A stretch of 64,000 bases of DNA from Blepharisma stoltei ATCC 30299. Lineage: Eukaryota > Protista > Ciliophora. The notes below the pieces were generated by a model. It searched no databases. It was not told the DNA's origin and saw only the letters and a program-made list of their open reading frames with translations. Position numbers and translations under genes: made by a program. Shown piece by piece: positions 1 through 44,087 of the stretch. Location of the stretch: the NCBI GenBank assembly GCA_965603825.1, contig CBFDEM010000022.1, positions 62,001 through 126,000 of the forward strand, read 5' to 3'. Position 1 is the stretch's first letter. The number at the start of each line of letters is the position of its first letter.

Positions 1-2839
1 ATCACTATTACGCAAATCTAATGCAATTTTCATATATTGCTTTGCGTAGATCTGCCAAAGGGCATCCTCCGCTTTTTCTCTAACATCAATATCATCAGCA
101 GTATCAAGTTTCTTGTACTCATGAATGATAAAACAAGCTTTTTTATATTTAGTAGGGATGAAAATCCCATCAGCCTTCTTTCTAAATCTATTTGGTGCTT
201 CGGAATGTAATGTATAATTTGAATCTTCTGTCATAATTGAGGCCAGCATCGCCATTCCTCCTAGTAAGATTTGAAAGTCTGCCTCTGTTTTACTAGTGTT
301 ATCTGTCATCTGATCAAGGACCATTGATTGCATTAGATTCTTGAATTCGGTTTTATCATCTAAGGTGATGTTAAATTTCTCAACTATCTTACCAATATCA
401 ACTTTTCCTAAGCCTATTTTTCTGTTAATTCACTTTAAAAGCAGTGAGTTGTAAAAACTCTTTTTTATTTCTCTATTAGGGACTACATATATTCAAGCGC
501 TCACAATGTTTTCCTTTTCCTTTTTAGTTATGTTATATGGTGTTAAATAGCCAAAATGTAGCAATAGCGAGAAAAATTTTTTTGTGCTGTTGAAATCTAA
601 TGGCAAATCTATATAGGAATCAATTTCTTCTCTTAATTCAAGATAGCCATTTTTCATTATTTCAAACAATTGATCATAAGATTCTAGGGAATTAAATGCT
701 GAGACCAGTGGATTAAGGTTATTAGTAAAGATTCAATAAGGCTTGAGAGGATTTCTATCTTGAGATTTTGCTTTTTCTATGCAATTTATTATTGAATGGG
801 GATTGTAAATTCTTTGTCCACTGATATTGTATCCGTTGCATCACAACTTAATTAATTCTTTTTGCTCTAATATTTCCTCATCTGTGTTACTCTCCAAGTT
901 TCGTTCGATTAGAGTATTTATCTCTGATTCTGTGAAGCCAAAAAATTGGGAGTATTCTATATTATTAACAGTATATGTATTAAAGCTGTTTATTCATGAA
1001 AACTGTGTCCCTCTAATAGGTAAAATGCCTACCAAAATCACTTTAAAAACAAAATCAGGTGTTTGTGCGCATATTCGGGCCAGGATATCTTCTATTATTA
1101 TTAGTAATCCATTTTGGTATGGAGTATTTATGAAACGACTAAAAGGGCTATCATAATCATCCACAATAATTATTGCATTCTTCTTGTAAAATTTATGTGT
1201 CAATAATATTTTCAAGAACTTTTATGCTTTTATTTTTATAATTTATTACTACATCTGGATTTTCTGAAAGATAATTTTTGATAACTTGGTCCAAGGATTC
1301 CCGATACTGTTGGTGATATTCCAAGTATGCGTCTTTGATTATATCTAAAACTGCACTCTGGTAATATTCCTCTACAGACTCATTTTCAAATATTTTTCTT
1401 ATATTGGAAAATCTTAATAAAATTGTTGGAATTTTCCCAGCATAGTTTTTGTAATAATAACCATTTTTTTCAGTTATTATTTTTAAACATTTTGTTTTGT
1501 CCAGGTTATCAACATAAATGTTATCTTTTCCACCAGTGAACAAGTACAAATTTTTAAAATTCCCAGAAGCATCCTTTCTTGGATGGAAAAAAGTTTTTAG
1601 CATGTTTATATTTAGAGTTTTCCCCCATTTTTGCGGACGGAAGATTAATATATTGGTATGACCATTATCTAAAATTTCTTTGATGAGTAATGATTTATCA
1701 ATATAGCCATCTTTATTCCTAACTGCCTTTTTAAAGCTACCGGAATCAGTAAACCATTTCCCACCAGATCTAGCCCTCATGATTGCTTGATTTGTTTGAG
1801 GTGTTAAACTTTTAATTTGCGGTAGGCGATGTGGTGTAGTAAATGTATCATCAATTTTAAATTTAAGATATCATGAAGAGCCTTTATTTTTTATTGTTCT
1901 AATCAAATTTATCGCCTCTCCTCATAAATCTGATTGCTTATACTCTCAAAGAGTGCAAAGTTGGTGGATTATTAAATTTTTTTGGATGAATTCCATTTCT
2001 TTTTCAAGCGCTTCCCAGGCTGAGATTTCATCAATCAATGCACAAATGATTTCCTTATTTACAATTTCAATCTCATTTGAGCTATAATTCGGCTGAGGAA
2101 GAGGGACATTTGGACTCTTGTCTAATTCGATGCTATGCACACCTAGAATATCTCTCAGCTTTAAACTAAAGGATGGGCAAAAACCACGAAAGGGCTCTAA
2201 AAACTCCGTGCTTCCGCTTGAGATCAGCATAATTGCGTTGAAAACAGACCATAATCCGCTTTCATGAGGATGCTCATGAAGCTTAAGACTTATTTCTTCA
2301 ATATTTACATTAGGAAAGAAGCCTCCAAATTTCAAGGTAGGGCCATTCTCTCCAGAATTCCTAATCTTGATTTCTTTTTGTATCAAATATTTCATAAGTT
2401 TCGGTATTTGCAAACCTAACCCGAAAGAGTCTATTAAAAATACAGTTTCTGAAGCTCTTTCGAGAACATCTCCATGAATAAGTGTGTGATTTTTTGGAAG
2501 AATCACCATCATCTGCCATAATGAATTTGATTCTGAAACTTGGCTGAGGATTTTTGATTCTCAAAATGTAACAAGCGGCTTTAGAAGAGCAAATCTATCG
2601 CTCTCAAGTGATTGACTTATAGCTGAGATATAAAATAAGACACCTGATGTTTCATCTTCGAAGGCGGGAGATTTTCCATTTGAAATATCAGGGCCTATTA
2701 TATGAATTCGATCGCCATAAATCAGTTGCAAAGCTTCTTTTATGCCATAAGCAGTTGAGCTAGGAACTGTAGAGCAAGATTCTGGCCACTCTGGGAGGTC
2801 CAAGAAGAATTTGTACAAATTGGCTTCCATATCAGTCAT
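1..2839 (-). pseudogene. CE-like + AAA-ATPase-like + PD-(D/E)XK gene, copy 1; frameshifted by a ~107-110 bp deletion at ~1195; runs off window start
   Basis: ORFs 2561-2839, 1946-2512 and 1193-1780 are one frame joined by TGA=Trp. Motifs YIDKS and RPQKWGKT are present. TAA at 1193 arises at the deletion junction; IIVDDYD, FGFTESE and IHEYKK continue in another frame. Confidence 0.85.
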
Positions 2840-3654: not shown

Positions 3655-6600
3655 TTATTTATCGTATAATTTTGGCTTTTTGCCTAGTTCAATTTCATCA
3701 TAGTCAAGCTTGCGTTTCATCACTAAGCCTTCTTCTCCTTCAATGTAACCATAACTATCGCCACCAATATTTTTGATAAGATCGCCAATTCTTTCTGCAC
3801 CGAGAGATCTTCTTTCTTCAATTTTTTCATTTTGAGACCCACTTTCTCCACATAATTTGGCTGATGCAGCCAATATTCCCCCGCTGGCTGAACTAAATTT
3901 TGTATTTATAATGGAAGCAAGATTGAAGTCGAAAGAATGCTCTTTAATCAGCATACTTCATTTATAACTATATTGAGCTTTAAAGAAAACAATACCACGG
4001 ACTATCATTTTGTCAAAATAATTGTAATGCTGATCACTATCACGCAAATCTAACGCAATTTTCATATACTGCTTCGCATAGATCTGCCAAAGGGCATCCT
4101 CCGCTTTTTCTTTAACATAATTAGCATCAGCAGTATCAAGTTTCTTGTATTCATGAATGATAACACTAGTTTTTTTATATTTAGTAGGTATGAAAATCCC
4201 ATCAGTCTTCTTTCTAAATATATTTGGTGCTTCGGAATGTAATGTATAATTTGCATCTTCTGTCATAATTGAGGCCATCATCGCTATTCCTCCTAGTGAG
4301 ATTTGAAAGTCTGCCTCTGTTTTACTAGTGTAATCGGTCATCTTATCAAGAATCATTGATTGGATAAGATTTTTGAATTCAGTTTTATCATCTAAGGTGG
4401 CGTTAAACTTCTCAACAATCCTACCAACATCAACTTTTCCTAAGCCTATTTTTCTTTTAATTCACTCTAAAAGCAGTGAGTTGTAAAAACTCTTTTTTAT
4501 TTCTCTATTAGGGACTACATAGATTCAAGTGCTCGCAAGGTTTTCCTTTTCCTTTTTAGTTGCTCTATATGGTGTTAAATAGCCAGCATGCAGCAATAGT
4601 GCGAAAAAAATATTTGTACTGTTTAAATCTAATGCCAAATTTATATAGTTATAAATTTCTTCTGATAATTCAAGATAACCAGTTTTCATTAATTCAAACA
4701 ATTTATCATAAGATTGCAGGGCATTAAATGCTGAGGCCAGTTGATTAAGGTCATTAGTAAAGATTCAATAAGACTGGAGAGGATTGCTATCTTGAGATTT
4801 TGCTTTTTTTAAACAACTCATTATTGAGAATGGATTGTAAATTTTTTCTCCACTAATATTGTATCCGTTGTATCACAGCTTAATTAATTCTCTTTGCTCT
4901 AACATTTCCTCCTCTGTATTACTCTGGAAGTTTCGCTCTATTAGAGTATTTACCTCTGATTCTGTGAAGCCAAAAAATTGGGAGTATTCTATATTTTTGA
5001 TTGTAAACGTATTATATTTGTTCATATATGAAAATTCTATCCCTTTAATAGGTAAAATGCCTACCATAATTACTTTCAAAACAAAACTAGGTAAATCTGT
5101 TCATATTGAGTTCAGAATATTTTCTATTATTTCTAATGCTTCATTATGGTGAGGAGCATTTATTGCACGACTAAAAGGGGCATCATAATCATCCACAATA
5201 ATAATTACGTTCTGCTTGTAAAATTTATGAGCAAATTTAGCAAGATTAGGCACAGCTTCTGATAGCATTTCTAATGAACTATTATTATCTTTGCAATCTC
5301 TAAACTCTTGAATATGCAATGGTAAAGTTATTTTATATGCATCGATTATACTTTCAAGCTCTAATATGTTTGTATTATCATAATCTATCACAATATTTGG
5401 ATGCTTTGAAACATAATTTTTGATAACCTCATCCAATAATGTGCAATACTCTGGGTAATATTTCGAGTATGCTTTTTTGATTATTTTTGAAAATTCAGTG
5501 AGGTAAAATTCATTCACAGGGTTATTGCCTAATTTTTTTATTTTGGAGAATTTTAGAAAAATTGTTGGAATTTTCCCAGCAAAATTTTTGTAATAATCGC
5601 CATTATCTTCTGTTATTATTTTTAAACATTTTGTTTTATCCAAGTTGTTAACATCAATGTTATCTTTTCCACCAGTGAACAAGTACAAATTTTTAAAATT
5701 CCCAAAAGCATCCTTTTTTGGGTGGAAAAAAGCTTTTAGCATGTTCATATTTAGAGTTTTACCCCATTTTTGCGGACGTAAGATGAGTATATTGGTGTCA
5801 TCATTAATTAAAATTTCTTTGATGAGTAATGATTTATCAATATAACAATCTTTATTCATAACTACCTTTTTAAAGCTTTCGGAATTAGATAACCATTTAC
5901 CATGAGATTTAGCCCTCATGATTGATTGATGTGTTGGAGGTGTTAAACTTTTAATTTCTGGTATGCGATATGGTGTGCTAAATATATCATCAGATTGAAA
6001 TTTTTTATGTAATTCTTCCAGAGGAGCTTTTATTCTTCTCATAAAATTTTGCGCCTCTACTCATGAGCCTGATTGCTTATATTCCCAAAGAGTGCAAAGT
6101 TTATTGATATTTAAATATCTTTGGATGTATACCATTTCTTGTTCAAACACTCCCCAGTGTAAGATTTCATCAATCAATGCATTCCTGATTCCCTCATTCA
6201 CAAAATCAAGATCACTTGAGCTATAATACAGCTGAGGAAGATCATTTGGACTCTTGCCTAATTCGATATTATGCTCATCTAGAATAGCACTCAGCTTTAA
6301 ACTAAAGCATGGGTCAAATTTACTAAAGGGCTCTAAAAACTCCGTGCTTCCGCTTGATATCAGCATAATTGCATTGAAAATAGACCACACTCCACTTTCA
6401 TGAGGATACACATGAAGCTTAAGACTTTTTTCTTCAATATTTACATTAGGAAAGAAGCCTCCACATTTCAAGGTAGGGCCTTTCTCTCTAATCACGATTT
6501 GTGTTTGTATCAAATATTTCATAAGTTTCGGTAGTTGCAAACCTAGCCCGAACGAGTCTATTAAAAAGACAGTTTCTGAAGCTCTTTGGAGAGCTTTTCC

Positions 6601-6954
6601 ATCAATAAGTGTGTGATTTTTGGGAAGAATCACCATCATCTGCCATAATGAATTTGATTCTGAAATTTTTGATTCTCAAAATGCAACAAGTGGCTTTAAA
6701 AGAGCAAATCTATCACTCATAAGTGACTGATTTATAGCTAAGATGTAAAATAAGACACCTGATGTTTCATCTTCGAAGGCGGGAGATTTTCCATTTGAAA
6801 TATCAGGGCCTATTATATGAATTCGATCGCCATAAATCAGTTTCAAAGCTTCTTTTATGCCATAAGCAGTTGAGCTAGGAACTGTAGAGCGAGATTCTGG
6901 CCACATTGGGAGGTCCAAGAAGTATTGGTACAAACTGGCTTCCATATCAGTCAT
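3655..6954 (-). CDS. CE-like + AAA-ATPase-like (PF09820-type) + PD-(D/E)XK nuclease (PDDEXK_9-type) protein, copy 2, 1099 aa, intact
   Basis: 3300-nt single frame with only TGA interruptions (gaps read by hand). Motifs YIDKS, RPQKWGKT, IIVDDYD, FGFTESEV, WYNGY, YNPFS, LLHAGYLT, VPNREI, E..KKTDG..IIHEYKK..ALWQIYAKQY. Confidence 0.9.
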
Positions 6955-7504
6955 TATTTTATTAAAAGGGGCTATTGGGATTTTATATTTTCCTTATTAA
7001 GATTTAAGAAATTATCAGGGCTGCTTTTTACAAATTTTGCAAGGCTGAAAGAGATTATTAGAACAGAATCAATAAATTTCATGTAATAAAAAGAATTATG
7101 AAATATATCGGCTTCTAATCTAGATATACACTCTAATATTTATAATTCCCATAAGAAAGCTTCGTCATGCGTTGTGCTTGATATCGGCTTGAGGAATATC
7201 CTGACACAAGCTTAATTCCTATTTTAGAGTTATCTAGAGTCATAACAAGACCTTCTAAAAGAAGCTTAAGCTGATAAAATATCTTAAGAATTTTCGTTCC
7301 AATCTACTAAAATCACCACAAATAACGTTCGGGATCATAAGCACATTTAGCAAGCTCCTGTCTATAAGTCTCCATCTAAATAATTTTATTTTTAATTTTT
7401 AACTCTAAGGAATTCTTCCAATGAATTATAAATTTAACGCAAACTCTTACCTAGACATATGAAAGTATTTGCGAACTCTCATTTATCCTCAATATGAAGA
7501 CGCT

Positions 7505-8922: not shown

Positions 8923-9326
8923 TTTTTATAAAAGGGACTACTCTACTTTAATATTTTCCTTACTCTCTTTTATTCTTTTTCGGAGTTTTGCTTGGGAGTT
9001 CTGGAATGGTGGTGGAAGTACTGTTGGAATAATTTTAGGAATAAAATAATTCTTTCTTGGAATAAGAGATTAAAAAGCTAAAAATTAATTATTACGCTTA
9101 TCAAAGTATGGAGAACTTATTAAAAAATGATTTATTATCATTATACTGTTAGATTTCGAGATCAATCATATCAATCTTGCAGTAAAGTTGTAAGCATTAT
9201 ACCAAAACTCACACTAAGTCTTGTTTATAATACGATAAGAGATGATGAAATAAACTAATGCAAGAGTAAATTGAGTTAAGTTAAATTAAATTAAGTGTGA
9301 TAATTCCATGATCGGATTAGCTACTA

Positions 9327-9865
9327 AATTCAAAATTGTAATAAATTGATGAATTTGGTCAACTGTGAGGTGAGGCTTGTCCTTGATAAATTCCACAATT
9401 TTTTAAAACCATCAGGTTTGCCTGTTAGCAAAAAGTAAAAAGTTTGTAAAAGCTTCTTCGTTTCCTTCATTTTCTTTTTCTCAGAGTTCTTTTACAGCTT
9501 TATCTAAATCATATGTATTGTAAGTGTATCGATTATCATAGAAAGGCTTGTCCTCGTCGAGGATTTTTTTAATCATCTTAATTTTTGATAAAAAGGATTA
9601 GGATTTTTTTGAGAAGTTCATTAACTTGGAATGTAGTAGACAATGAAAGGTGAGAACATTTTTTATCGAGAAGAGCACGAACTACCTGAGGCAGATGAGA
9701 ATTGATAAATGTATGAGATTGGTCTGAAGACATGAGATTTTGATCAAATTCAGAAATTTGTGACTCAACTTCGATTAATGATAATTGCAAATCAAGATCG
9801 TCACGATTCAGATTAGCGCGGAGGTCTGCGTAGGAGATTCTATAATCTTGTTTGGCTTCTGACAT
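9327..9865 (-). pseudogene. 5' fragment of the USP gene (mirror of 26788-27406)
   Basis: First ~90 aa identical to ORF 26788, followed by two internal deletions, a TAA stop and truncation. Confidence 0.9.
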
Positions 9866-10052
9866 TTTATATAAAGGAATGAATATTCTGTCTTTATTAG
9901 ATGGTATTTAAGTGGTAAAATGTTTTATATAAATATGATAGAATTTTTAAATAGTTATTCTTGTGGATCTAAGGCAGAATATTATTATATTTTCAATATT
10001 TCAATAAAAACATAGATAAATACATAATCCTATTAAGAAAATTTATAGAAAT

Positions 10053-13000: not shown

Positions 13001-15978
13001 ACAAAGGAAAAATTGGAAGAGTCTGTTAAAAAATACAATGAAAGTCTGAAAATTATTGAGCTGATGGAAGACCTAAAATTGAAAATGAATGATAAAATTT
13101 CAAATTTAACTGAAGAATGTGAGACTAAAGATCAGGATCTTAAAACATATATTGACAAATATAATCAAAGTCAATCTACTATTGATGAAATAGCAAATAA
13201 AAATTGTATACTAAATGATAAGCTTTCTCAGCTTAAATTAGAGCTAGAAAAATATAAGGGCGAAGCAGATATCACTGATCAAATAAGACTTGATTTAGAA
13301 AAAAAGCATGAACTCTATAAAGCATCAACAAATAAGCTTATAGACACTCAAAAGCAAAATATTTCTTCCTTAGAAAATGAAATTTCTGAATTGAAAGAAA
13401 ATCTCAAGCGTATTATTACTGAATCGGAAATGAAAGATAACGAGTATGATACAAATATATCAGAACTGCAAAATAAATTCAACGAAAATCTTCGGTACTT
13501 GCAAATTTTGCAGGACAATTATAATTCTCTACTGCTTAAAGAAGAAAATAGCCAAAAATTAATGTCAAAGCTTGAAAAGAAAAAGAAAAAGATTGAAAAT
13601 CTAAAAGCAAACATTTTAGATTTAAGCAAGTCAAAGGAAGAAATGGAGATTAAGATCCAGGATCTCACAAAAGATTTACAAAATCAAGATTATCTGTCAG
13701 ATCTTAAAAACAGCAAAGAAAAATTGGAAAGAGAGTATCAATCTTTAGAAGAGTGTCACAATGCTTCAGTTAAAAATAATGAAGAATTGAATGAGAAACT
13801 CAATGACTTAATTAATGAAAAGCAGTCTCTTCAAGCGTTAATTGACTCTAAGCAAGTAGAAATAGCTGAAAAAGAAAATGAAATAAATATACAAAAATCA
13901 ATATGGCAGGAAAAGCATGAAATGCTGATAGACCAATTAAATAAAAAAGAAAGCGAAATCAAAAAAATGAAGATACTATCGGAAATAATAAATTATTATT
14001 TGAAGAAATTTCATCATTAAAAGAAGAAATTGAATTATTAAAGAATGAAAATACACTTAAAGATGAGAAATTAAAAGATCTAGAAGAATTACGCGAAATC
14101 AATGATAATTTGAATTCAAAAATAGAAGAATTAACTCTCTCAGTTGAGGATTTAAGAGAAGAACAATTATGACTCGAAAAAAAAAATAAAGAACTGGAAA
14201 TACAAAATGTTTTATTAAAAAGAGAAAAAGAAAAATTGGCCTTTGAAGCAAAAGCCCAAAAGGAAAATGATGGAATAAGTGAAAAGCTAAAAGAAGATTA
14301 TGAATATCTGAAAAATAAAAAATTAGAGTTAACTAGAGAGCTTGACGAACTTAAATTAACATACAGTAGAGAACAATTGAAAAACTCTGAAAAGGAGAAA
14401 TTATTGGCTAAAGATATTTCTGATTTGGAAAATAATAATAAAAATTTATTGAAAGATATTGCTGCTAAAAATAAAGAATTAGAAAATTTTGAAAATATCA
14501 CATCAACTTTTGAAGAATATAAGAGAAAAAATGAAATTTTATCGCAAAAAATAGAAGAAGATAAAGAAGTCATAGAGCTCTTAAATAGAGAAAAATCGGA
14601 TTCAAATCTAAAGTATCAATCATTTCAAATTGAAAAAATAGAGCTTATTAAGCAAAACGACGAGGAAAAATCAGATCTCAACTCAAAAATCAATGATTTA
14701 CGCCAGCAAATCCTTCAAGCTAGACAAGAAAATGAATCAGTTATTGAGAACTATTTAAAGCTAAAGGAAACAACAAATAAGCTAAATTCCCAAATTAATA
14801 GACATGGAAGTCTATTATTAGAAAACAAAAATTTAGAAAGCAAGCTATTAATTATTGAAAAGGAAAATCAAGGATTAAATGAAGAAATAGTGAAAAAGGA
14901 TAATGAAATTAACTATATAAAAGAAACATACAATGACAAAATTAAATCCTTAAACAATCTCATTGAAGATTCAAAAATTGTATTAAATTCAAAGGAAGTA
15001 GAAATAGAGAAAAAAAATGAAATAATTCAAGATTTGAATTATCAGCTTCAAGCCAGGATTCAAGAACTAAATGCAAATGGTGATTTAATAGCTCAATACG
15101 TTGAAGAAATCCAAAGAAAAGATATGGAAATTCTTGAGTATGAAGAAATTATTAAAACTATTGATGAAAAATATGAAACGAAAATAAAAGAAATTTCTGA
15201 TAAGTATTCAGCAGAAATAAAGGGTAGAGATTATAAAATTATAAGGCTTGAAGAAGAGAGTCAAAGAATTGAATTAGAGCATCATAATTTATTAGAAGAG
15301 TACGACAAATTGCTAAATACTAACATGGATTTAGAAGAAAATATTAAAAAATTAAATGAAAAAATCCAAAATCTTGAAGATGAAATAAATAATTCTCTCA
15401 ATCAAGCAAGCCCAGGAGAAATAGATAATGATAAAGAAAAAATCGAAGTAATTATAAAGTAGACTGAATATGAAATACTTTTAGAAGAATTTAATGAAAT
15501 AAAAAGTTCTTTAGATGTTTTACCAGGAAATGAAGAAGAAATATCAAAGCTTAAAGAAGAAATCTCTAGGAAAACCATAGATCTAGATAGCGCTCATACA
15601 GAATTAAATGTATTGGTTATTTAGAATATAAACGAAAGATTAAAAGAGAGTTTAAGTGATAATATTGACCTAAGAAGTAAAATTAGAGAGATTGAGATTA
15701 ATAATCAAGAAAATCAAACACTTTTAAATAGGACTTCTGTCTTAGAAAAAGAATTATCGGATTATCAAAATCAAATTGGAAGCAATGAGAAGCTAAAAAG
15801 TGAGTTAAATGATGCAAATACGCAAAATGAGATGATGAGAAAAAAGGTTGCCGAATATACAAGTTTGATTGAAGATCCCAAGTTTCAGCTAAAAGCACAA
15901 GGGCCGAATACGAACAACTATATTCATTTTTTAGAAGAGCTTAGAAAAATGTATAGTGAGGCTTCAAGAAATGAATAA
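10053..15978 (+). pseudogene. Disrupted copy of the large coiled-coil gene
   Basis: Near-identical to 20487-26600. TAA at 12336 is created by a 9-nt deletion; frame changes occur near 12550 and 13970, with a ~170-nt deletion near 15435. Keeps 15-nt introns at 10467-10481, 15448-15462 and 15610-15624. Confidence 0.85.
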
Positions 15979-20287: not shown

Positions 20288-23200
20288 TTAAAATAAATAT
20301 ATTGAAAATGACTTTTATACAAAAAATATCTAAAATAATTCTATGTCGTCCTTTCACTATTTATTGGATTTTTGTTGATTTAAAATGCTAGTATGCAAGA
20401 AACAGTGATTGTACAATATATAGAAATTATGAATGGCACAAGTATTTAATAAATATATAAATTAAATAATGAGCTTGATTTATTGGTTATTCATTTCTTG
20501 AAGCCTCACTATACATTTTTCTAAGTTCATCTAGTTCATTTTGAAGCTCATAGTTAGTTTCTTCTAAAAAATTAATTTGGTTTTCATAATAATTTTTGGT
20601 ATTCGGCCCTTGTGCTTTTAGCTGATACTTGAGATCTTCAATCAAACTTGTATATTCAACAGTCTTTTTTCTCATCATCTCATTTTGCGTATTTGCATCA
20701 TTTAACTCACTTTTTAGCTTCTCAAAGCTTCCAATTTGATTTTGATAATCCGATAATTCTTTTTCTAAGCCAGAAATCCTATCTAAAAGTGCTTGATTTT
20801 CTTGATTATTAATCTCAATCTCTCTAATTTTACTTTTTAGGTCAATATTATCAATTAAACTCTCTTTTAATCTTTCTTTTATATTCTAAATAACCAATAC
20901 ATTTAATTCTGCATGAGTGCTATCTAAGTCTATGGTTTTCCTAGAGACTTCTTCTTTAAGCTTTGATATTTCTTCTTCATTTCCTGGTAAAACATCTGAA
21001 GAATTTTTTATTGCATTAAATTCTTCCAATAGTATTTCATATTCAGCCTACATTATAATTACTTCGATTTTTTCATAATTTTGAATAATATAAGAATTTT
21101 CATTTTTCAATGAATCATATGAATCCCTTGTCTTTTCTAGTTCTGAACTCAGATTGTTTATGATGTCATTCTTTTCATCTATATCTAGTTTTGCTTTATC
21201 AAGCTGTGTTGCTAAGTCTTCGATTTTAGCATTTAAGATGGAAAATTCTTTATCTATTTCTCCTAGGCTTGCTTGATTGAGAGAATTATTTATTTCATCT
21301 TCAAGATTTTGGATTTTTTCATTTAATTTTTCAATATTTTCTTCTAAATCCATATTAGTATTTAGCAATTTGTCGTACTCTTCTAATAAATTATGATGCT
21401 CTAATTCAATTCTTTGACTCTCTTCTTCAAGCCTTATAATTTTCAAATCTCTACCCTTTATTTCTGCTGAATACTTATCAGAAATTTCTTTTATTTTCGT
21501 TTCGTATTTTTCATCAATAGTTTTAATAATTTCTTCATACTCAAGAATTTCCATATCTTTTCTTTGGATTTCTTCAACGTATTGAGCTATTAAATCACCA
21601 TTTGCATTTAGTTCTTGAATCCTGGCTTGAAGCTGATAATTCAAATCTTGAATTATTTCATTTTTTTTCTCTATTTCTACTTCCTTTGAATTTAATACAT
21701 TTTTTGAATCCTCAATGAGATTGTTTAAGGATTTAATTTTGTCATTGTATGTTTCTTTTATATAGTTAATTTCATTATCCTTTTTCACTATTTCTTCATT
21801 TAATCCTTGATTTTCCTTTTCAATAATTAATAGCTTGCTTTCTAAATTTTTGTTGTCTAATAATAGGCTTCCATGTCTATTAATTTGAGAATTTAGCTCA
21901 TTTGCTGTTTCCTTTAGTTTTAAATAGTCCTCAATAACTGATTCATTTTCTTGTCTAGCTTGAAGGAGTTGCTGGCCTAAATCATTGATTTTTGAGTTGA
22001 GATCTGATTTTTCCTCGTCGTTCTGCTTAATAAGTTCTAATTTTTCATTTTGCAATGATTGATACTTTAGATCTGAATCCAATTTTTCTCTATTTAAGAG
22101 CTCTATGGCTTCTTTATCTTCTTCTATTTTTTGCGATAAAATTTCATTTTTTCTCTTATATTCTTCAAAAGTTGATGTGATATTTTCAAAATTTTCTAAT
22201 TCTTTATTTTTAGCAGCAATATCTTTCAATAAATTTTTATTATTATTTTCCAAATCAGAAATATCTTTAGCCAATAATTTCTCCTTTTCAGAGTTTTTTA
22301 ATTGTTCTCTACTGTATGTTAATTTAAGTTCGTCAAGCTCTCTAGTTAACTCTAATTTTTTATTTTTCAGATATTCATAATCTTCTTTTAGCTTTTCACT
22401 TATTCCATCGTTTTCCTTTTGGTTTTTTGCTTCAAAGGCCAATTTTTCTTTTTCTCTTTTTAATAAAACATTTTGTATTTCCAGTTCTTTATTTTTTTTT
22501 TCGAGTCATAATTGTTCTTCTCTTAAATCCTCAACTGAGAGAGTTAATTCTTCTATTTTTGAATTCAAATTATCATTGATTTCGCGTAATTCTTCTAGAT
22601 CTTTTAATTTCTCATCTTTAAGTGTATTTTCATTCTTTAATAATTCAATTTCTTCAAATAATAATTTATTATTTCCAATAGCATCTTCATTTTTTTTGAT
22701 TTCGCTTTCTTTTTTATTTAATTGGTCTATCAGCATTTCATGCTTTTCTTGCCATATTGATTTTTGTATATTTATTTCATTTTCTTTTTCAGTTATTTCT
22801 ACTTGCTTAGAGTCAATTAACGCTTGAAGAGACTGCTTTTCATTAATTAAGTCATTGAGTTTCTCATTCAAGTCTTCATTATTTTTAACTGAAGCATTGT
22901 AACACTCTTCTAAAGATTGATACTCTCTTTCCAATTTTTCTTTGCTGTTTTTAAGATCTGACAGATAATCTTGATTTTGTAAATCTTTTGTGAGATCCTG
23001 GATCTTAATCTCCATTTCTTCCTTTGACTTGCTTAAATCTAAAATGTTTGCTTTTAGATTTTCAATCTTTTTCTTTTTCTTTTCAAGCTTTGACATTAAT
23101 TTTTGGCTATTTTCTTCTTTAAGCAGTAGAGAATTATAATTGTCTTGCAGAATTTGCAAGTACCGAAGGTTTTCGTTGAATTTATTTTGAAGTTCTGATA

Positions 23201-26200
23201 TATTTGTATCATACTCGTTATCTTTCATTTCCGATTCAGTAATAATACGCTTGAGATTTTCCTTCAATTCAGAAATTTCATTTTCTAAGGAAGAAATATT
23301 TTGCTTTTGAGTGTCTATAAGCTTATTTGTTGATGCTTTATAGAGTTCATGCTTTTTTTCTAAATCAAGTCTTATCTGATCAGTGATATCTGCTTCGCCC
23401 TTATATTTTTCTAGCTCTAATTTAAGCTGAGAAAGCTTATCATTTAGTATACAATTTTTATTTGCTATTTCATCAATAGTAGATTGACTTTGATTATATT
23501 TGTCAATATATGTTTTAAGATCCTGATCTTTAGTCTCACATTCTTCAGTTAAATTTGAAATTTTATCATTCATTTTCAATTTTAGGTCTTCCATCAGCTC
23601 AATAATTTTCAGACTTTCATTGTATTTTTTAACAGACTCCTCCAATTTTTCCTTTGTTTCTTGCAATTCTCTATTAATTCTACTTTTATCCTCCTCTCTC
23701 TCCTTACTCAACTTTTCTTCAATAATTCCATATGGCATCAAATCATGTTCTTGGTCCTTTTGGTCCTCAATTAAAGCTTCAATATCATTCTCTAGCTCAA
23801 AAATTTTGTCCTCTTTGGCTTTAATTTCTGCTTGAAAATTATTCCGGTTAATCTCAATTTGTTTATTTAAGTCTGATATTATTGCATCCTTACTTTGTAT
23901 TTCTTTCAAAAAGTTATTCGATAATTTTTCAACAGTGACTTTTAGCTTTTCAATATCTTCTTTTGCCTGAATATAGTTGCTTTCTTTATTTTTCCAATTT
24001 AAATTTTCATATAAAAGATCTGAGTTTTGTTTTTCTAGATCTTTAACCATGTCTTTATATTTTTTGAGTTTTGTTGCTAATTTTTCTTCATTTGATTTAT
24101 ATCTTGATAAAGAATCTTGGAGCTCTTCGTTTAGATTGATAAGTCCTCCTAGTTTAACTTCAAGCTCCTTATTCAATTTTGCTCGATTTTCAAGTTCTTC
24201 TTTAGCCGCTTCTAATTTTTCTAATGAATTTTTATATAATTTTTCTAAACTTTTTATCTTTTCTTTATCATCTTGGATTTCAAATTTAATTTTTAAGGAC
24301 TGAGCTTCTTCCAGGGAAATTTTCAATCTGCTTATTTCATTTAAAAGAGAGTCATTTTTATAAGATAATTCCTTAATTTCCATATCATCTTTGTCAATTT
24401 CATTATTCAGGCTTATGATTTTTTTTATCATTTTATTCACAGCCAATGCTAAATCATCTAAACCTCCGTCTATAGTGTGACCAATTTCAATTTCTTCATA
24501 ATTCAATATTTTTTCTATAATCATTTCTATTTTATTTTCGACTGTTTTTGATTTTTCACATTCTGTTAAGAATTCATTCCTCAAGTCGTCAATAGCCTCT
24601 TTCAAATTACTATTTTCTTCTGATTGCTTTTTAAGCTGAGATTGTAATGATTCATTTTTTTTAGTCAGGTCTCCTATGCTATTGATGCTTGCTTTGCTAT
24701 CATATTGAATATTTTTTAATTGTGTTGTGAGGTTTTTGTTTTTAGATGTTTCTTCTGCTAGTTTATTATTTAATTCGCTCAATTCTTTTCTTAATCCCTC
24801 GTTTGCAATTATTTTTGATTCAAGTTCACTGTTTTGATCTTTAATTTTCTGTTTTATGGATTGGTTTTCATTTAAAAGATTCCTAGCCTGCTTAATATCA
24901 GCTTCTAATTCTTTTATATTTTCTCTCAAATTTGAATTTTCTTGAGCAAAACGCTTATTTTCTATTTCGAGTGTTTTAAGTTTTTGATTCAATGGATAAA
25001 GCTCAGTTTCAGTACGCAGCCTTATATTTTCATAGCTATTTATCTGCTCTATAAGTTTAATTTTATAATTTTCAAGACTTTGAACTTCTTTTATATAGCG
25101 TCTTATTATTAGATCTTTGGATTCTAAGTCATCTTTAAGTCTCTTAATATCAGCTTCATTTGCTGCAATATCACTTAGAGCTTGATTGAAATTTTGCCAA
25201 TAATCATCATTTTTCTTTTGCAATTCTTTTTTACTTTGATTTGAAGAGTGAAGATCTCTATTTAATTTTTCGATTTCTTCTCTTAATTCCTTAATCAGCC
25301 TTTCATATCTGTTTTTCTCTGACTTTGACTCATTTAAGAGTCTATCATAATTTATCTTGGAGGTAAGATATAAATTGGAATTGCTTTCTGATCCTGCTAA
25401 TTTTAGTTTTAAATCAATTATTTCTGATCGTAAGTCTTCATTTTTCTTTGATAGCTGGCTATTGCACTCTTCAAGATTATGACTTTTCTCTTGCAATTCA
25501 TTTATTACTGATGATGCCTTAGATAAGTTATTTTCAAGAGTCCCAATATTTGGTATTTGGCTGTTTTCTTTTATTTCTTTTTGCAATTTTTCAATTTTTC
25601 TTTTATAATTATTCTCACTATTAATAAGTTGCCTTTTGCCTTCGGTTAAAGCAGCTAACTCTTGCTTCAAATCTTTTATTTCTTTTTTTAGCATATCGTT
25701 ATTACTTCTTTCATTTTCTAATTCAGATTTACGCCAAATGTTTGACTTTTCAACTGATTGATTGCTCAAATTTTGAATTTTTTCTTTTAATCTATTATTT
25801 TCTCTTTCTAAGGCCAAGTTTGAGGTTTCCAAGTCTCTATATATTTTTTCAATTGTTTCCGTTTTTGATTCAACATTATTTCTATTTGGACTTCTAGACA
25901 AGCGCTGCTCATTTCGAGATTTTATGATATCATTTTCTTTTTGTAATTCTGCGCATCTATTCTTAAGTTCTACTGCACGATCTCAATAATCTTTCATGGT
26001 GGACTCTTGTGAGTTTAAAATTGCCTCTTTTTGCTCTAGTATCTGCTTTAACTCATTAATTTCTTCCTGATACTTGTTCTCTAGGCTGTGCTTCAGTTCA
26101 TTGATCTTTTTTTGATACTTTTCAATGATTTTATTCTCAAAAGCTTCTTCATTGCCCCTATTGTTAGGATTCTACATAAATATCACCTTATAATTTGCAT

Positions 26201-27406
26201 TATTCATCATCTCATTCAATTTTTGCTGTAAAATTCTTTCATTACTCTTCATTGCTCTAATTTTTTCCAAAATTATTGAGGGCATGCTTTCCAATTTAGT
26301 TTTATTTGGCGCAAATCCATTCAATTCATTTATAATTTTTGTAAGCTCGCTTTCAAATCACATAGTTTCTACATTTTTCAAAGTTTGATCGGACCTTGGA
26401 GTGAGATTTTGCCCTAATAATTGATCTTCATCACCTGAATGGCCATAACTGGCTATCCTTGCATTATCATTGAATTTATCTCTACTTGGTGAATATGTTT
26501 TGTAAGTACATAAGTTTTGCAAATCGTTGCTCAGGTGCTTCTTGGATCGATTTTTAGAATTTTGAGTGCCCGGTGAGCTGAGTTTGGAAGAATGCTGCAT
26601 ATTTTTATAAATTTTCTAAATATGATTATGCATTTATCTATATTTTATTGAAATACTGAAAATATAATAATATTCTGCCTTAAATACACAAGAATAACTA
26701 TTTTAAAAATTCTATCATATTTATATAAAACATTTTACCACTTAAATACCATCTAATAAAGACAGAATATTCATTCCTTTATATAAAATGTCAGAAGCCA
26801 AACAAGATTATAGAATCTCCTACGCAGACCTCCGTGCTAATCTGAATCGTGACGATCTTGATTTGCAATTATCATTAATCGAAGTTGAGTCACAAATTTC
26901 TGAATTTGATCAAAATCTCATGTCTTCAGACCAATCTCATACATTTATCAATTCTCATCTGCCTCAGGTAGTTCGTGCTCTTCTCGATAAAAAATGTTCT
27001 CACCTTTCATTGTCTACTACATTCCAAGTTAATGAACTTCTCAAAAAAATCCTAATCCTTTCTATCCAAACATTAAAAGCTGAGCAATTCGGCACTATCG
27101 AGATGATTAAAAAAATCCTTGACGAGGACAAGCCATTCTATGATAATCGATACACTTATAATACATATGATTTAGATAAAACTGTAAAAGAACTCTGAGA
27201 AAAAGAAAATGAAGGAAACGAAGAAGCTTTTAAAAACTTTTTACTTTTTGCTAACAGGCAAACCCATACAACACACAATATTCTTTTTAAATACAATTTA
27301 AGTGTATTTATAAGATATGAAGGGTTTAAAAAAGTTGTGGAATTTATCAAGGACAAGCCTCACCCCACAGTTGACCAAATTCATCAATTTATTACAATTT
27401 TGAATT
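20288..27406. repeat. Right arm of inverted duplication (left arm ~9327-16165)
   Basis: Reverse-complement match to the left arm. Confidence 0.93.
20487..26600 (-). CDS. Large coiled-coil protein, ~2022 aa; introns 26172-26186, 21048-21062, 20886-20900
   Basis: Four ORF pieces share one frame, linked by TGA=Trp and three stop-containing 15-nt GT-AG introns. E/K/L/N-rich heptad composition. Confidence 0.85.
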
Positions 27407-35721: not shown

Positions 35722-36318
35722 GTTTGTTGACTTATAAGAAGGAGAAATTAATCATTAAGCTATTTAAATGGAAAAGATGAAAGTGGAGTTGTGGAAATAG
35801 ATAGCTACTAGAAGCCAAAGCTTATGGGTTTAGACAAAATTTTATTTAGAGTTAAAATTAAAAATAAAATTATTTAGATGGAGACTTATAGACAGGAGCT
35901 TGCTAAATGGGCTTATGATTCCGAACATTATTAGTGATGATTTTTAGTAGATTGGAACGAAAATTCTTTTGATATTTTATCAGCTTAAGCTTCTTTTTTA
36001 GAAGCTCTTGCTATGACTCTAGATAACTCTAAAATAGAAATTTAGCTTGCGTCAGGATATTCCTCAAGCCAATATCAAGCACAACACATGACGAAGCTTT
36101 CTTATGGGAATTATAAATATTAGAGTGTATATAAGTATCACACTAGATTAGACCGATATATTTCATAATTCTTTTTATTACATGAAATTTATTGATTCTG
36201 CTCTAATAATCTCTTTTGGCCTTGCAAAATTTGTAAAAAGCAGCCCTGATAATATCTTAAATCTTAATAAGGAAAATATAAAATCCCAATAGCCCCTTTT
36301 AATAAAATACTGACTGGT

Positions 36319-39300
36319 ATGGAAGCCAGTTTGCACCAATACTTCTTGGACTTCCGAGCGTGGCCAGAATCTCGCTCTACAGTTCCTAGCTCAACTGCTT
36401 ATGGCATAAAAGAAGCTTTGAAACTGATTTATGGCGATCGAATTCATATAATAGGCCCTGATATTTCAAATGGAAAATCTCCCGCCTTTGAAGATGAAAC
36501 ATCAGGTGTCTTATTTTACATCTTAGCTATAAATCGGTCACTTATGAGTGATAGATTTGCTCTTTTAAAGCCACTTGTTGCATTTTGGGAATCAAAAATC
36601 CTCAGCCAAGCTTCAGAATCAAATTCATTATGGCAGATGATGGTGATTCTTCCCAAAAATCACACACTTATTGATGGGAAAGCTCTCCAAAGAGCTTCAG
36701 AAACTGTCTTTTTAATAGACTCGTTCGGGCTAGGTTTGCAACTACCGAAACTTATGAAATATTTGATACAAACACAAATCGTGATTAGAGAGAAAGGCCC
36801 TACCTTGAAATGTGGAGGTTTCTTTCCTAATGTAAATATTGAAGAAAAAAGTCTTAAGCTTCATGAGCATCCTCATGAAAGTGGAGTGTGGTCTGTTTTC
36901 AATGCAATTATGCTGATTTCAAGCGGAAGCACTGAGTTTTTAGAGCCCTTTAGTAAATTTGACTCATGCTTTAGTTTAAAGCTGAGTGCTATTCTAGATG
37001 AGCATAATATCGAATTAGGCAAGAGTCCAAATGATCTTCCTCAGCTGTATTATAGCTCAAGTGATCTTGAGTTTGTGAATGAGGGAATTAGGAATGCATT
37101 GATTGATGAAATCTCACACTGGGGAGTGCTTGAAAAAGAAATGGTATACATCCAAAGATATTTAAGTATCAATAAACTTTGCACTCTTTGAGAGTATAAG
37201 CAATCAGGCTCATGAGTAGAGGCGCAAAATTTCATGAGAAGAATAAAAGCTCCTCTGGAAGAATTACATAAAACATTTCAATCTGATGATATATTTACCA
37301 CACCAGATCGCCTACCACAAATTAAAAGTTTAACACCTCCAACACATCAAACAATCATGAGGGGTAAATCTGATTGCATTTGGTTTACTGATGCCGAAAA
37401 TTTTAAAATGGCAGTTAGGAATAAAGATGGTTATATTGATAAATCATTACTCATCAAAGCAATTTTAAATAAAGGTGCCATTAAAATACTCATCTTACGT
37501 CCGCAACAATGGGGTAAAACTCTAAATATGAGCATGTTAAAAACCTTTTTCCACCCAAAAAAGGATGCTTTTGGGAATTTTAAAAATTTGTACTTGTTCA
37601 CTGGTGGAAAAGATAACATTGATGTTAACAACTTGGACAAAACAAAATGCTTAAAAATAATAACTGAAAATAATGGTTATTATTACAAAAACTTTGCTGG
37701 GAAAATTCCAACGATTTTTCTAAAATTTTCCCTAATAGAAACATTGGGCAATGAGCCTGTGAAGGAATTTTACCGCAGTGAATTTTCAAAAATAATCAAA
37801 TTAGCATACTCGAAATATTACCCAGAGTATTGCACATCCTTGGACCAAGCTATCAAAAATTATGTTTCAAAGCATCCAGATATTGTAATAGATTATAATA
37901 ATAAATGCATACCAGAGCTTGAAAATATTATTGACACATATAAAATAACTTTATTACCGCACGTTCAATTGTTTAGAGATTTCAAAGATGATAATTCATT
38001 AGAAATGCTTTCAAAAGCTGTTCCTAATCTTGCTAGATTTGCTCATAAATTTTACGAGCAGAATGTAATTGTTATTGTGGATGATTACGATACCCCTTTT
38101 AGTCGTGCACTAAATGCTCCTTACCAAAATGAAGCATTAGCAATTATAGAAAAAATTCTGAACTCAATATGAAAAAATATTCCTAGTTGTGTTTTGAAAG
38201 TAATTATGGTAGGTGTTTTACCTATTAAAGGGATAAAATTTTCAGAAATAAACACCTTTAATACACATACAGTTAAAAATGTGGAATACTCCCAATTTTT
38301 TGGCTTCACAGAATCAGAGGTAAGTACTCTTATTGAGCAAAATTTGGAGAGTAACACAGCTGAGGAAATGTTAGAGCAAAAAGAATTAATTAAGCTGTGA
38401 TATAATGGATACAATATTAATGGACAAAAAATTTACAATCCATTCTCAATAATAAGCTGTATAGCACAAGCAATGTCTCATGAAAGCAATCCTCTCCAGC
38501 CTTATTGAATCTTTAATAATAACCTTAGTCAACTGGTCTCAGCATTTAATGCCCTGCGATCTTATGATAAATTGTTTGAAATAATGAAAACTGGCTATCT
38601 TGAATTATTAGAAGAAATTGATAACTATATAAATTTGTCATTAGATTTAAAAAGTCCAAAAATTTTTTTCGCACTATTGCTGCATGCTGGCTATTTAACA
38701 CCATATAGCACAACTGAAAAGGAAAAAAAAAACCTTGTGAAAAAATGAATATATGTCGTTCCTAATAGAGAAATAAAAAAGAGTTTTTACAACTCACTGC
38801 TTTTAGAGTGAATTGACAGAAAAATAGGCTCAGGAAAAGTTGATATAGTTGAGATAATTGAAAAGTTTAACACCACCTTAGATGATAAAACTGAATTCAA
38901 AAATTTTATCCAAACAATGATTCTTGATAAGATGACTGATTGCACTAGTAAAACAGAGGCCGACTTTCAAATCTTATTAGGAGGAATGGCGATGTTGGCT
39001 TCAATTATGACAGAAGATGCAAATTATGCATTACATTCCGAAGCACCAAATAGATTTAGAAAGAAGGCTGATGGGATTTTCATCCCTACTAAATATAAAA
39101 AGGCTAGTGTTATTATTCATGAATACAAGAAACTTGATACTGCTGATGCAATTGATGTTAGAGAAAAAGCGGAAGATGCCCTTTGGCAGATCTATGCAAA
39201 GCAGTATATGAAAATTGCGTTAGATTTGTGTGATAGTGATCAGCATTATAATTATTTTGACAAAATGATAATCCGTGGTATTGTTTTCTACAAAGCTAAA

Positions 39301-39609
39301 TTTGGTTATCAATGAAATATGGTGATTAAAGAGCACTCTTTCGACTTCAATTTTGCTTCCATTGTAAATACAAAATTTAGTTCAGCTACCGGGGGAATAT
39401 TAGCTGTATCAGCCAAATTGTGTGGAGAAAGTGGGTCTCAAAATGAAAAAATTGAAGAAAGAAGATCTCTCGGTGCAGAAAAAATTGGTGATCTGATCAA
39501 AAATATTGGTGGCGATCATTATGGTTACATTGAAGGAGATGAAGGCTTAGAGATGAAACGCAAACTTGACTATGATGAAATTGAATTAGGCAAAAGGCCA
39601 AAACTATAG
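36319..39609 (+). CDS. CE-like + AAA-ATPase-like + PD-(D/E)XK protein, copy 4, 1096 aa, intact
   Basis: Single 3291-nt frame with TGA=Trp and the same motifs as copy 2. Inverted counterpart of 3655-6954, including ~470 bp upstream. Confidence 0.9.
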
Positions 39610-40010
39610 GATAAGTAATTTTTAATTACATGTGAAATATTTTTGTTTTGATTAAATCTCCTTAAGTAAATACTTCAGCAGCGCGCTATGTATCTTTAAT
39701 AAATACAGATTTTAATTACCATATCTTTTCATACTCATTTTCATTATAAGCAGAAATCATAATTGATAGGTGCTCCCGAAGATTTGTGCAAGTTGATAAT
39801 ACTTTCATAAGCATTTTCCTGCTCTATTGCTCTATCAAGCCCGCTAGGAAAATTTTCCAATGTATTATAAAATACATGTAAGCGATCAAAAAAATAATTT
39901 TCTAACACAAGAGGTTAATAAGCGAGCTTTAAGGAGATCCTTTCCTATAGCAAAGCATTCAGCAAAACATAAAGAAGCAATGCTTTTAAAGGCTTAATAA
40001 AAATCATATT
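39610..40010. repeat. 3' flank of copy 4, directly repeated at ~43165-43510 after copy 5
   Basis: Shared AAGTAAATACTTCAGCAGCGCGCT...GATCCTTTCCTATAGCAAA blocks. Confidence 0.85.
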
Positions 40011-40119
40011 GAAAAACAGAGACATTTTCTGACGCGAGTATACTCTTAAAAAGCCACTTGTTGCGTTTTGGGAATCAAAAATCCTCAGCCAAGCTTCAGA
40101 ATCAAATTCATTATGGCAG

Positions 40120-43100
40120 ATGATGGTGATTCTTCCAAAAAATCACACACTTATTGATGGAAAAGCTCTCGAAAGAGCAGCAGAAACTGTATTTTTAATA
40201 GACTCTTTTGGGTTAGATTTGCAAATACCGAAACTTATGAAATATTTGATACAAAGAGAAATCGAGATTAGGATTTCTGGAGAGAATAGCGCTCGTTTGA
40301 AATTTGGAGGCTTCTTTCCTAATGTAAATATTGATGAAAGAAGTCTTAAGCTTCATGAGTATCCTTATGAAAGTGGGCTGTGGACTGTTTTCAATACAAT
40401 TATGTTGATTTCAAGCGGAAACAATGAGTTTTTAGTGCCCTTTAGTAAGTTTAACCCATGCTTTAGTTTAAAGCTGGGAGCTATTCTAGACGTACATAAT
40501 ATCAAATTAGACAAGAGTCCAAATGGCCCTCTTCCTCATCTGAATTATAAGTCAAATGAGATTGAATTTGTGAATAAGGGAATCAGTAGTTCATTGATTC
40601 ATGAACTGTCAGACTGGGAAGTGCTTGAAAAAGAAATGGAATTCATCCAAAATCATTTAAATATCCAACAACTTTGCACTGTTTGAGATTATAAGCAATC
40701 AAACTTATGAGGAGAGGCCAAAAATTTTGTTAGAAGAATAAAAGCTCTTCTGGAAAATATAGACTCTTCATGATGTCTTAGATTTAAATTTGATGATATA
40801 TTTATCACACCACATCGCCTACCACAAATTAAAAGTTTAACACCTCCAACGCATCAATCAATCATGAAGGGTAATTCTGGTGGTAATTGCATAATTAATA
40901 CTGATCACTTTAAAGAGGCAGTTATGAATAAAGATTGCTATATTGATAAATCATTACTCATCAAAGAAATTTTAACTAGTAGCGCCCCAAATATACTCAT
41001 CTTACGTCCGCAAAAATGGGGGAAAACACTAAATATGAGCATGCTAAAAGCTTTTTTCCACCCAAGAAATACTTTTGGGAATTTTAAAAATTTGTACTTG
41101 TTCACTGGTGGAAAAGATAACATTGATGTAAACAACTTGGACAAAACAAAATGCTTAAAAATAATAACTGAAAATGATGGTTATTATTACAAAAAGTTTG
41201 CTGGGAAAATTCCAACGATTTTTCTAAAATTCTCCAAAATAAAAGAAAAATTGGACAATGAGCCCGTAGAGGAATATTACCGCAGAGCAATTTCATATAT
41301 AATCAAAGACGCATACTTAGAATATTACCCAGAGTATTGCACATCCTTGGACGAAGCTATCAAAAATTATAGCGCTTTCCCGAGGATGGCGCGGAATGGC
41401 GCCATCCTCGGGAAAGCGCTATATGTTTCAAAGCAGCCAGATATTGTGATAAATTATAATAATACATCCATATTAGAGCTTGAAAATATTATTGACGCAT
41501 ATAAAATACCTTTGCCGTTGCATGTTCAATTGTTTAGAGATTACAAAGAAGATAAGCCATCAGTTATACTATCAGATGCTGTGCCGAATCTGGCTAGATT
41601 TGCTCATATATTTTACAAGCAGAAGGTAATTATTATTGTGGACGATTATGATACCCCTTTTAGTCTTATATTAAATGCTCCTTACCAAAATGATGCATTA
41701 AGAATAATAGATAATATTATGACATCAATATGCACAGATAGACCTCCTTATGTTTTGAAAGTGATTTTGACAGGCATTTTACCTATTAAAGGGATAAGAC
41801 TTTCATGAATAAGAAGCTTTGAATTATATACAGTTAAAAAGGCAAAATACTCCCAGTTTTTTGGCTTTACAGAATCAGAGATAAATACTCTTATTGAGAA
41901 AAACTTGGAGAGTAACACAGAGGAGGAAATGTTAGAGCAAAAAGAATTAATAAAGCTGTGATACAACGGATACAATATTAGTGGGCAAAAAATTTACAAT
42001 CCACACTCAATAATGCATTTTTTAGATGAAGTAAAATCCCGAGATAGTAATCCTCTCCAGCCTTATTGAGCCGATAATGACCTTGATTCATTGATCCCAG
42101 CATTTAATGCCCTACAATCTTATGATAAATTGTTTGAATTAATGAGAACTGGCTATCTTGAATTATCAGAAGAAATTGATAGCTATATAAATTTGCCATT
42201 AGATTTCAGCAACACAAAATTTTTTTTCGCACTATTGCTTCATGCTGGCTATTTAACACCATATGGAACAACTAAAAATGAAAAGAAAAACCTTGTGAGC
42301 ACTTGAATATATGTAGTTCCTAATAGAGAAATAAAAAAGAGTTTTTACAACTCACTGCTTTTAGAGTGAATTAACAGAAAAATAGGCTCAGGAAAAGTTG
42401 ATATTGGCAAGATAGTAGAGAATTTTAACACCACCTTAGATAATAAAACTGAATTCAAAAATCTTATCCAATCAATGATTCTTGATAAGATGATCGATTG
42501 CACTAGTAAAACAGAGGCAGACTTTCAAATCTTACTAGGAGGAATAGCAATGCTTGCCTCAATTATGAGAGAAGATGCAAATTATACATTGCATTCCGAA
42601 GCACCAAATATATTTAGAAAGAAGGCTGATGGGATTTTCATCCCTACTAAAGATAAAAAAACTAGTGTTATAATTCATGAATACAAGAAAATTGATACTG
42701 CTAATATTAAGAATATTAGAGATAAAGAAGAGGATGCCCTTTGGCAGATCTATGCAAAGCAGTATATGAAAATTGCGCTAGATTTGCGTGATAGTGATCC
42801 GCATTATAATTATTTTGATAAAATGATAATCCGTGGTATTATTTTCTACAAATCTCATTTTGGTTATAAATGAAATATGGTTATTAAAGAGCACTCTTTC
42901 GACTTCAATATTGCTTTAAGGATAAATAGTGTTTTTACTTCAGATGAGGGGGGAATTTTGGCTGTATCAGCCAAATTATGTGGAGAAAGTGGGTCTCAAA
43001 ATGAAAAAATTGAAGAAAGAAGATCTTTTGGTGCAGAAAGAATTGATGATCTGATCAAAAATATTAGTGGCGATGATTATAGTTACATTGGAGAAGAAGG

Positions 43101-43161
43101 ATTAGAGATGAAAATCAAACTTGACCCTCCAAGCAAAAAGCCAAAATTGCAGGATAATTAA
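40120..43161 (+). CDS. AAA-nuclease family copy 5, N-terminally truncated, 1013 aa including an 18-aa insert from a palindromic element
   Basis: Homology starts near 40045 (LKKPLVAFW); first ATG at 40120; frame open to TAA at 43161 with TGA=Trp. Confidence 0.8.
41368..41423. mobile_element. TA-bounded perfect palindrome (25-bp arms, 6-nt loop), IES/MITE-like insertion
   Basis: TATAGCGCTTTCCCGAGGATGGCGC-GGAATG-GCGCCATCCTCGGGAAAGCGCTATA. Paralogs read AAAAAT-TAT-GTTTCA without the 54 bp. Confidence 0.88.
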
Positions 43162-43692: not shown

Positions 43693-43748
43693 TATAGTAA
43701 TTGCCCGAGGATGGCGCAAGATAGCGCCATCCTCGGGCAATTACTATA
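43693..43748. mobile_element. Second member of the TA-bounded 56-bp palindrome family
   Basis: TATAGTAATTGCCCGAGGATGGCGC-AAGATA-GCGCCATCCTCGGGCAATTACTATA; same length, same ends and same 14-bp inner stem as 41368-41423. Confidence 0.82.
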
Positions 43749-43831
43749 TAATATATCAGATATTCCGTTTCAATCCTTTATCATCCAGGCAGGAAGATTT
43801 ATAGGCTGGTTTGCTAAGGTAGAACTAATAT

Positions 43832-43875
43832 GACTGTTTGGCCGAGTGGTCTAAGGCGGTAGCTTAAGGCGCTAT

Positions 43876-43906
<31 letters not shown>

Positions 43907-43911
43907 AGTCA
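43832..43911 (+). tRNA. tRNA-Leu(AAG)
   Basis: Acceptor GACTGTT/AGCAGTC-A, A-box TGGCCGAGTGG, anticodon arm GTAGC-TTAAGGC-GCTAT, variable arm, GTTCAAATCC T-loop, downstream T-runs. Confidence 0.95.
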
Positions 43912-44087
43912 TTTCTTTTATTTAAATTTCTTTAACGATTTAAATTAAACTAAATCAATTTAAATAATTTTTCAAGCAGATTTTTATTTAAAAACTCTTT
44001 TCTTTTTTTCCTTTATTACTTAAAAATAATTATATACTAAATATCAGAAACTCCTAAATCAAAACTCTGAATTGAGCATTAAGTGTA

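Follow-up and report, generated by a model that had tools for sequence, protein, structure and literature searches.

A family of 52-bp palindromic elements with IES-like ends in the Blepharisma stoltei macronuclear genome, a probable MITE

Ciliates normally confine derivatives of DNA transposons to the germline, and every published Blepharisma MITE is an IES. About 70% of Blepharisma IESs are intragenic, their first length peak lies at 65 bp, and the IESs of 153 and 174 bp share the terminus TATAGnnnTTT (PMC9942856). The authors of that work suggest that the excisase is unable to act on very short loops; they further describe excision as a continuum and list cryptic IESs of at least 50 bp (PMC9942856). 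The somatic transposase genes of Blepharisma are not flanked by terminal repeats (PMC9942806). Outside ciliates, the human 80-bp MITE Made1 (MiHsmar1), derived from the mariner element Hsmar1, has a 37+6+37 layout (PMC1784062, PMC2800235).

Here we describe a family of hairpin elements in B. stoltei, starting from two copies in a stretch of 64,000 nt (the window). With a probability of about 0.7, we read the family as a non-autonomous DNA mini-transposon (MITE) with IES-like ends that is kept in the macronucleus, with its small size as the most likely reason. A somatic MITE just under the first IES peak makes the proposed geometric limit of the excisase testable at about 54 natural sites.

Structure and copies of the hairpin family

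Re-reading both hairpins of the window confirms the pair of perfect palindromes described in an earlier note. The hairpin upstream of tRNA-Leu(AAG), at a gap of 82 nt, is a perfect 25+6+25 inverted repeat, with an arm of 26 if the flanking A/T is counted. It shares its geometry, the TATAG ends and the CCCGAGGATGGCGC core with the copy in the AAA-ATPase-like gene, which starts 2325 nt before it (Table 1). The loops differ at 4/6 bases and the arms at positions 6, 7, 8 and 11, and each of these arm differences is mirrored on the opposite arm, as the note had stated. Once the two elements are set aside, the longest perfect arm in the window is 10 nt, and eight shuffles give 9–11 nt; the hairpin core has 5 matches against 0.4 expected. 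Chance origin of the two hairpins is excluded. Their closeness is unremarkable, with two of 54 randomly placed copies expected at most 2.4 kb apart 0.17 times.

Table 1. Coordinates of the hairpin element, its sister copy, empty sites and neighbouring genes in the window
Feature	Position	Strand	Remark
Subfamily-B hairpin element including both TA copies	43693..43748	.	intergenic; between host-family gene end (43161) and tRNA-Leu
52-bp element without flanking TA	43695-43746		within 43693..43748
Left TA, probable target-site duplication / IES-like terminal direct repeat	43693..43694	.	judged from other copies; no paralogue in the window has this site empty
Left 23-bp terminal inverted repeat	43695..43717	+	TAG, variable bases, conserved TTGCCCGAGGATGGCGC block
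6-nt spacer AAGATA	43718..43723	.	subfamily A: GGAATG; subfamily C: 5-nt ATTGA
Right 23-bp terminal inverted repeat	43724..43746	-	perfect complement of left repeat
Right TA	43747..43748	.
Subfamily-A copy	41368..41423	.	in AAA-ATPase-like gene; one of nine identical copies in the genome
Host ORF (UGA=Trp code), multicopy family	39973..43161	+	passive target, separate from element
Empty site, single TA, neighbouring paralogue	37861..37862	+
Empty site, single TA, second paralogue	5414..5415	-
Empty site, single TA, third paralogue	1272..1273	-
tRNA-Leu(AAG)	43831..43912	+	incidental neighbour

The genome searched, 41,464,486 bp in 64 contigs with the window at C22:62001-126000, appears to be the macronuclear (somatic) genome of B. 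stoltei. The 14-nt core occurs exactly 69 times in it, compared to 0 occurrences of the reversed-pattern control. The family comprises 53–54 dispersed copies on 35 contigs, so that further copies, on which the proposal of a family depended, do exist. This tally combines 44 copies that were read, with mismatches allowed, with 9 covariance-model matches at E < 1e-6 and one at 0.002. Including both TAs, copies are 53–57 nt long (53–56 nt for the read copies, 54–57 nt for full-length model matches). They consist of two inverted arms and a spacer of 5–6 nt and nothing else, which makes a 52-bp element with 23-bp terminal inverted repeats (TIRs). The flanks of the copies are mostly unrelated to one another.

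Three subfamilies are distinguished among the 44 read copies, with the 9–10 diverged model matches of 54–55 nt standing outside these counts. Subfamily A has nine identical copies on nine contigs (arm CGCTTT, spacer GGAATG), among them the window copy in the AAA-ATPase-like gene. Subfamily B has 32 copies (arm xAATTG, spacer mostly AAGATA or AAAATA) and includes the hairpin next to the tRNA gene. Subfamily C has three copies, with the core CCCGATGATGG and a 5-nt spacer. Most subfamily-B spacers end in TA, and the end motif recurs in palindromic IES families of 153–228 bp (PMC9942856). Both points would suit a 54-nt hairpin left over as the shell of a longer germline element after its interior has been removed as an IES. 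In A, in C and in one copy of B, nevertheless, the spacer has no TA while the geometry is unchanged, and we regard this origin as very improbable.

Two further sequences on contig C13 deserve mention. At C13:818134 (L058:1490-1544) lies a degenerate copy reduced to its inner stem with a 5-nt spacer; it is kept outside the family total. At C13:302952-303004 there is an unrelated near-perfect hairpin of 53 nt with the same TATAGnnnTT ends, single-copy in the macronuclear assembly, which is possibly a second element below 65 bp.

The fixed geometry, together with a GC-rich core in an AT-rich genome, could also be produced by a library adapter or vector, namely a hairpin adapter with variable bases. 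Against such an artefact, which the earlier note had named as fatal to its proposal, stand the precise TA duplication, the three subfamilies, their mutational decay and the biased genomic placement, and an exact pattern scan of metagenome, viral and prokaryotic genome collections gave 0 matches in all three. An adapter origin is barely conceivable. The family is not described in the Blepharisma genome papers, whose text was searched for palindromes, or in later papers. With 53–54 copies, empty paralogue sites and no mention in the papers searched, the notion of an undescribed mini-element family with independent insertions is supported. The mini-MITE family is real and apparently unpublished; the class of MITEs made of TIRs throughout is already known, and the family is small.

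Insertion sites and host genes

Genes in this genome region read TGA as Trp and stop at TAA or TAG. The host ORF of the subfamily-A copy has a paralogue at 36271-39609 with the domain PF09820 (AAA-ATPase_like). At the site of insertion, three paralogues in the window carry a single TA and the fourth holds the hairpin. Because the empty paralogues carry a single TA, the insert amounts to 54 nt: the 52-bp element, which starts with TAG and ends with CTA, and one extra TA. Similar length differences are found at other loci. A paralogue at C61:132313-132809 spans the 551-nt query in 497 nt, the paralogues at C4:104218 and C4:99596 are exactly 54 nt shorter than the element-bearing copy, and at the C54 locus three paralogues are 56–59 nt shorter and two others are split at the element. 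Targeting of TA is a property of mariner elements, and the TA target duplication of the Tc1/mariner type is seen here. In addition, the family has the features of MITEs, being short, non-coding and bounded by TIRs, with a target-site duplication visible through empty sites and with scattered copies that are uniform in length and highly identical. Beyond TA, the flanks of the copies show a weak T/AT bias only and no strong target consensus. The element inserts at TA and duplicates it.

One pair of insertions does not look like random TA targeting and counts against our reading. A subfamily-B copy at C4:84194 (L004:1490-1545) and a subfamily-A copy at C4:109076 (L005:1490-1545) share one TA position in two paralogues with flanks of only about 55–70% identity, and the other paralogues are empty. 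The pair could result from a hotspot, from element-to-element conversion or from a shared IES junction. A third candidate for this site, at C4:59911, was rejected since it lies about 1 kb off the homologous position. The host gene at L005:880-1395 belongs to a family with at least 140 matches, arranged in tandem arrays every ~4.5–5 kb (C4, C35, C17, C32, C25).

Copies are strongly depleted from coding sequence. With frames scored on loci freed of the element, only 8–10 of the 44 read copies lie in long stop-free frames, where occupancies of 0.68–0.77 (from the TA sites of the window) or 0.44–0.60 (from the TA sites in the flanks of the copies) are expected, with p ranging from 3e-4 to 4e-14. 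The flanks are AT-rich (GC 0.27 vs 0.31). The coding copies divide into four stop-free insertions of 18 codons, the window copy being one such in-frame insertion of 18 extra codons, and four with an in-frame TAG. All tested coding hosts (the window gene, C61, C4 and C54) belong to multicopy families; among the four hosts with an in-frame TAG, one (C54) is shown to be multicopy. On our reading, the element is not removed and is exposed to selection, which would have left copies mainly in intergenic DNA and redundant gene families. MITEs that editing does not accommodate would in this way be purged from genes like ordinary insertions. As a separate observation, an integrase-like ORF is interrupted by the copy at C50:398278 (L044:1490-1545), which sits at the first acidic motif position of this ORF and in the stop-carrying frame.

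The neighbourhood of the two window copies had raised the question of links to tRNA and nuclease genes. An association with tRNA genes does not survive the genome-wide view, in which 1/44 copies, namely the hairpin of the window itself, is near a tRNA gene. The AAA-ATPase-like family has 3/44 copies at distances of up to 1.5 kb, two of them in this window. A mild enrichment, if there is one, is explained by tolerance in redundant arrays and leaves at most a weak link; as for the nuclease part of the claim, Pfam confirmed no nuclease domain on TGA-free pieces of the host family. Several copies and fragments of this family of ~1100-aa PF09820 AAA-ATPase_like proteins occupy 1-8925 (-) and 36271-43161 (+) of the window, and another member lies near locus L056. 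By eye they contain a PD-(D/E)XK-like motif, and their architecture is more typical of bacteria. The window also contains a ~6-kb inverted duplication (9583-15921 and 20589-27070; 93–99% identity, 4.7-kb centre) of a long coiled-coil gene, the copy of which at about 10–15 kb is broken into several ORFs.

Divergence of the arms and mode of copying

Within subfamily B, 38 departures from the consensus affect one arm only, 7 are compensated and 9 change both arms without matching. Most compensated differences fall between A, B and C and mark the founders of master lineages. Identical haplotypes with mismatched arms recur at unlinked loci, which implies that imperfect elements are copied whole. 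One arm pair occurs with the spacer in both orientations, and arms appear to be sometimes inverted or homogenised in the master copy. The family would accordingly have spread in bursts from few master copies, with A very recent, B older and more varied, and subfamily C and the diverged 55-nt copies as remains of older bursts.

The first of two origins proposed in the earlier note, selection on a cruciform with a protein-bound core, would make the hairpin a cis-acting element of the host, extruded as cruciform or folded as RNA and linked to tRNAs or AAA-ATPase-like genes. Covariation between the arms lies above both controls, single-stranded copies are predicted to fold at -30 to -34 kcal/mol, and the core is conserved. 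The rows of the alignment are related, which inflates the covariation score, and decay of one arm dominates. Moreover, the element is absent from paralogues, disrupts genes and is tied to neither gene class by the counts given above, and Rfam gives no match for the hairpin at the gathering score. The ratio of 38 to 7 gives no support to selection acting on a cruciform copy by copy, and a selected host element of any such kind is hardly credible. The conserved core itself stands. Arm positions 5–6 are the most variable and 9–25 the least, a pattern biased by the core-based search. A Tc1/mariner transposase that reads a subterminal block would give low variation there. The core is better, and plausibly, read as a transposase-binding terminal repeat, so that a protein-bound core is retained from the proposal in this form.

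The second proposed origin, fold-back synthesis, belongs to a developmental scenario in which hairpins either arise by fold-back or are excised germline pieces inserted at TA cuts of the excisase, and later become fixed in the clonal macronucleus. It would account for the perfect symmetry of subfamily A, and a shared IES junction would explain why two subfamilies occupy one TA in two paralogues. Fold-back synthesis would, on the other hand, reset symmetry at each insertion, and the mismatched-arm haplotypes common to unlinked loci speak against this. The graded decay of single arms, together with deletions, points to inherited copies of different ages. We hold a developmental origin to be quite improbable and prefer transposition of whole elements.

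Ends, size and retention in the macronucleus

The ends of the element resemble those of IESs. The arms begin with TATAGnnnTT in 60 of 84 cases and with the full TATAGnnnTTT in 16, and the element is TA-bounded with inverted termini of the IES type. In three other respects it departs from IESs: 53–54 sites are occupied in the macronuclear assembly instead of being limited to the germline, the length counted as for an IES is 54 bp compared to a first peak of 65 bp, and the share in long ORFs is far below the intragenic share of IESs. End-pair and covariance-model searches of the macronuclear assembly revealed no elements of greater length that share these ends, and among the 50 TATAGnnnTT pairs listed at a distance of 70–100 nt none contains the core and none is palindromic by eye.

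A mobile IES family that is inefficiently excised would look similar in part. The assembly would then show the retained majority form, the element would be missing from part of the macronuclear copies, and further family members might be excised completely and thus invisible in the macronucleus. Its TA-bounded, IES-like ends, the four copies that bring an in-frame stop into long ORFs and the described continuum of excision down to cryptic IESs (PMC9942856) agree with this explanation. The 4/8 coding insertions with in-frame TAG are in fact a point against our own reading, as an excised element would give them too. What weighs against a leaky IES is the strong depletion from long ORFs, the presence of at least five element-free paralogues of the tested stop-carrying host, and the length of 54 bp, below the first IES peak. 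We consider it unlikely, and the copies would instead be fully retained.

For the retained MITE, the most likely reason would be that 54 bp is shorter than the shortest loop that a PiggyBac-type excisase can form, so that the element stays. Taken on its own, we would give escape through small size an even chance. The lack of longer members and the 53-nt hairpin on C13 agree with a size floor, but a similar picture could result if the fold-back is too rigid, if small RNAs do not mark the element or if excision is partial. The element is most likely moved in trans by a TA-targeting DDE transposase that is probably germline-limited. In the macronuclear genome, lone or widely spaced ends are no more frequent than in the control, and the published TIRs of Bogo and BstTc1 do not match the ends of the hairpin element. 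Given also that somatic transposase genes lack TIRs, we expect the autonomous partner in the germline, where transposition itself would take place. At 52 bp, the duplex offers a transposase very little length for ordinary paired-end synapsis, which counts against the MITE reading. Speculatively, looping could be bypassed by cruciform extrusion or by the use of ends from sister chromatids. Combining these points, we tentatively propose, as a doubtful picture, a recently active 52-bp transposon with IES-type ends that evades elimination below the minimal loop of the excisase and may move as an extruded cruciform, joining its ends without looping, possibly via the editing machinery. If size evasion is true, the family offers naturally occurring sites for testing the size floor of Blepharisma editing, a route by which MITEs leak into the ciliate soma, and a recently active transposon smaller than Made1.

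In architecture, the element is best compared with Made1. Both consist only of two TIRs and a 6-bp spacer, form a near-perfect palindrome and occur as dispersed non-coding copies. Made1 is larger (arms of 37, total of 80) and has thousands of copies, whereas the family described here has arms of 23 bp, a length of 52 bp and about 54 copies. Made1 has its partner Hsmar1, in contrast to the present family with no known autonomous partner, and the likeness is one of architecture without a claimed relation in sequence. The Blepharisma MITIES (BogoMITE, rnd-1_family-87 / -160; PMC9942856) come from the same species and are likewise TA-bounded palindromic mobile repeats, and the 153- and 174-bp IES classes have the end motif TATAGnnnTTT in common with our family. 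The MITIES are germline-limited and 153–389 bp long, while the hairpin family has 54 bp, is present in the macronuclear assembly and is depleted from ORFs. BogoMITE differs further in its TAA duplication and TIR, and family-87 is set beside the hairpin by description only. The mobile IESs of Paramecium (FAM_2183; FAM_78, 50 bp; FAM_670, 46 bp; Thon solo TIRs; PMC8354472, PMC3464196) are similarly short, non-autonomous, TA-bounded families, some of them with 46–50 bp and about 50 copies. These Paramecium elements are excised, with a minimum of 26 bp, whereas the Blepharisma hairpin family is apparently retained in the macronucleus.
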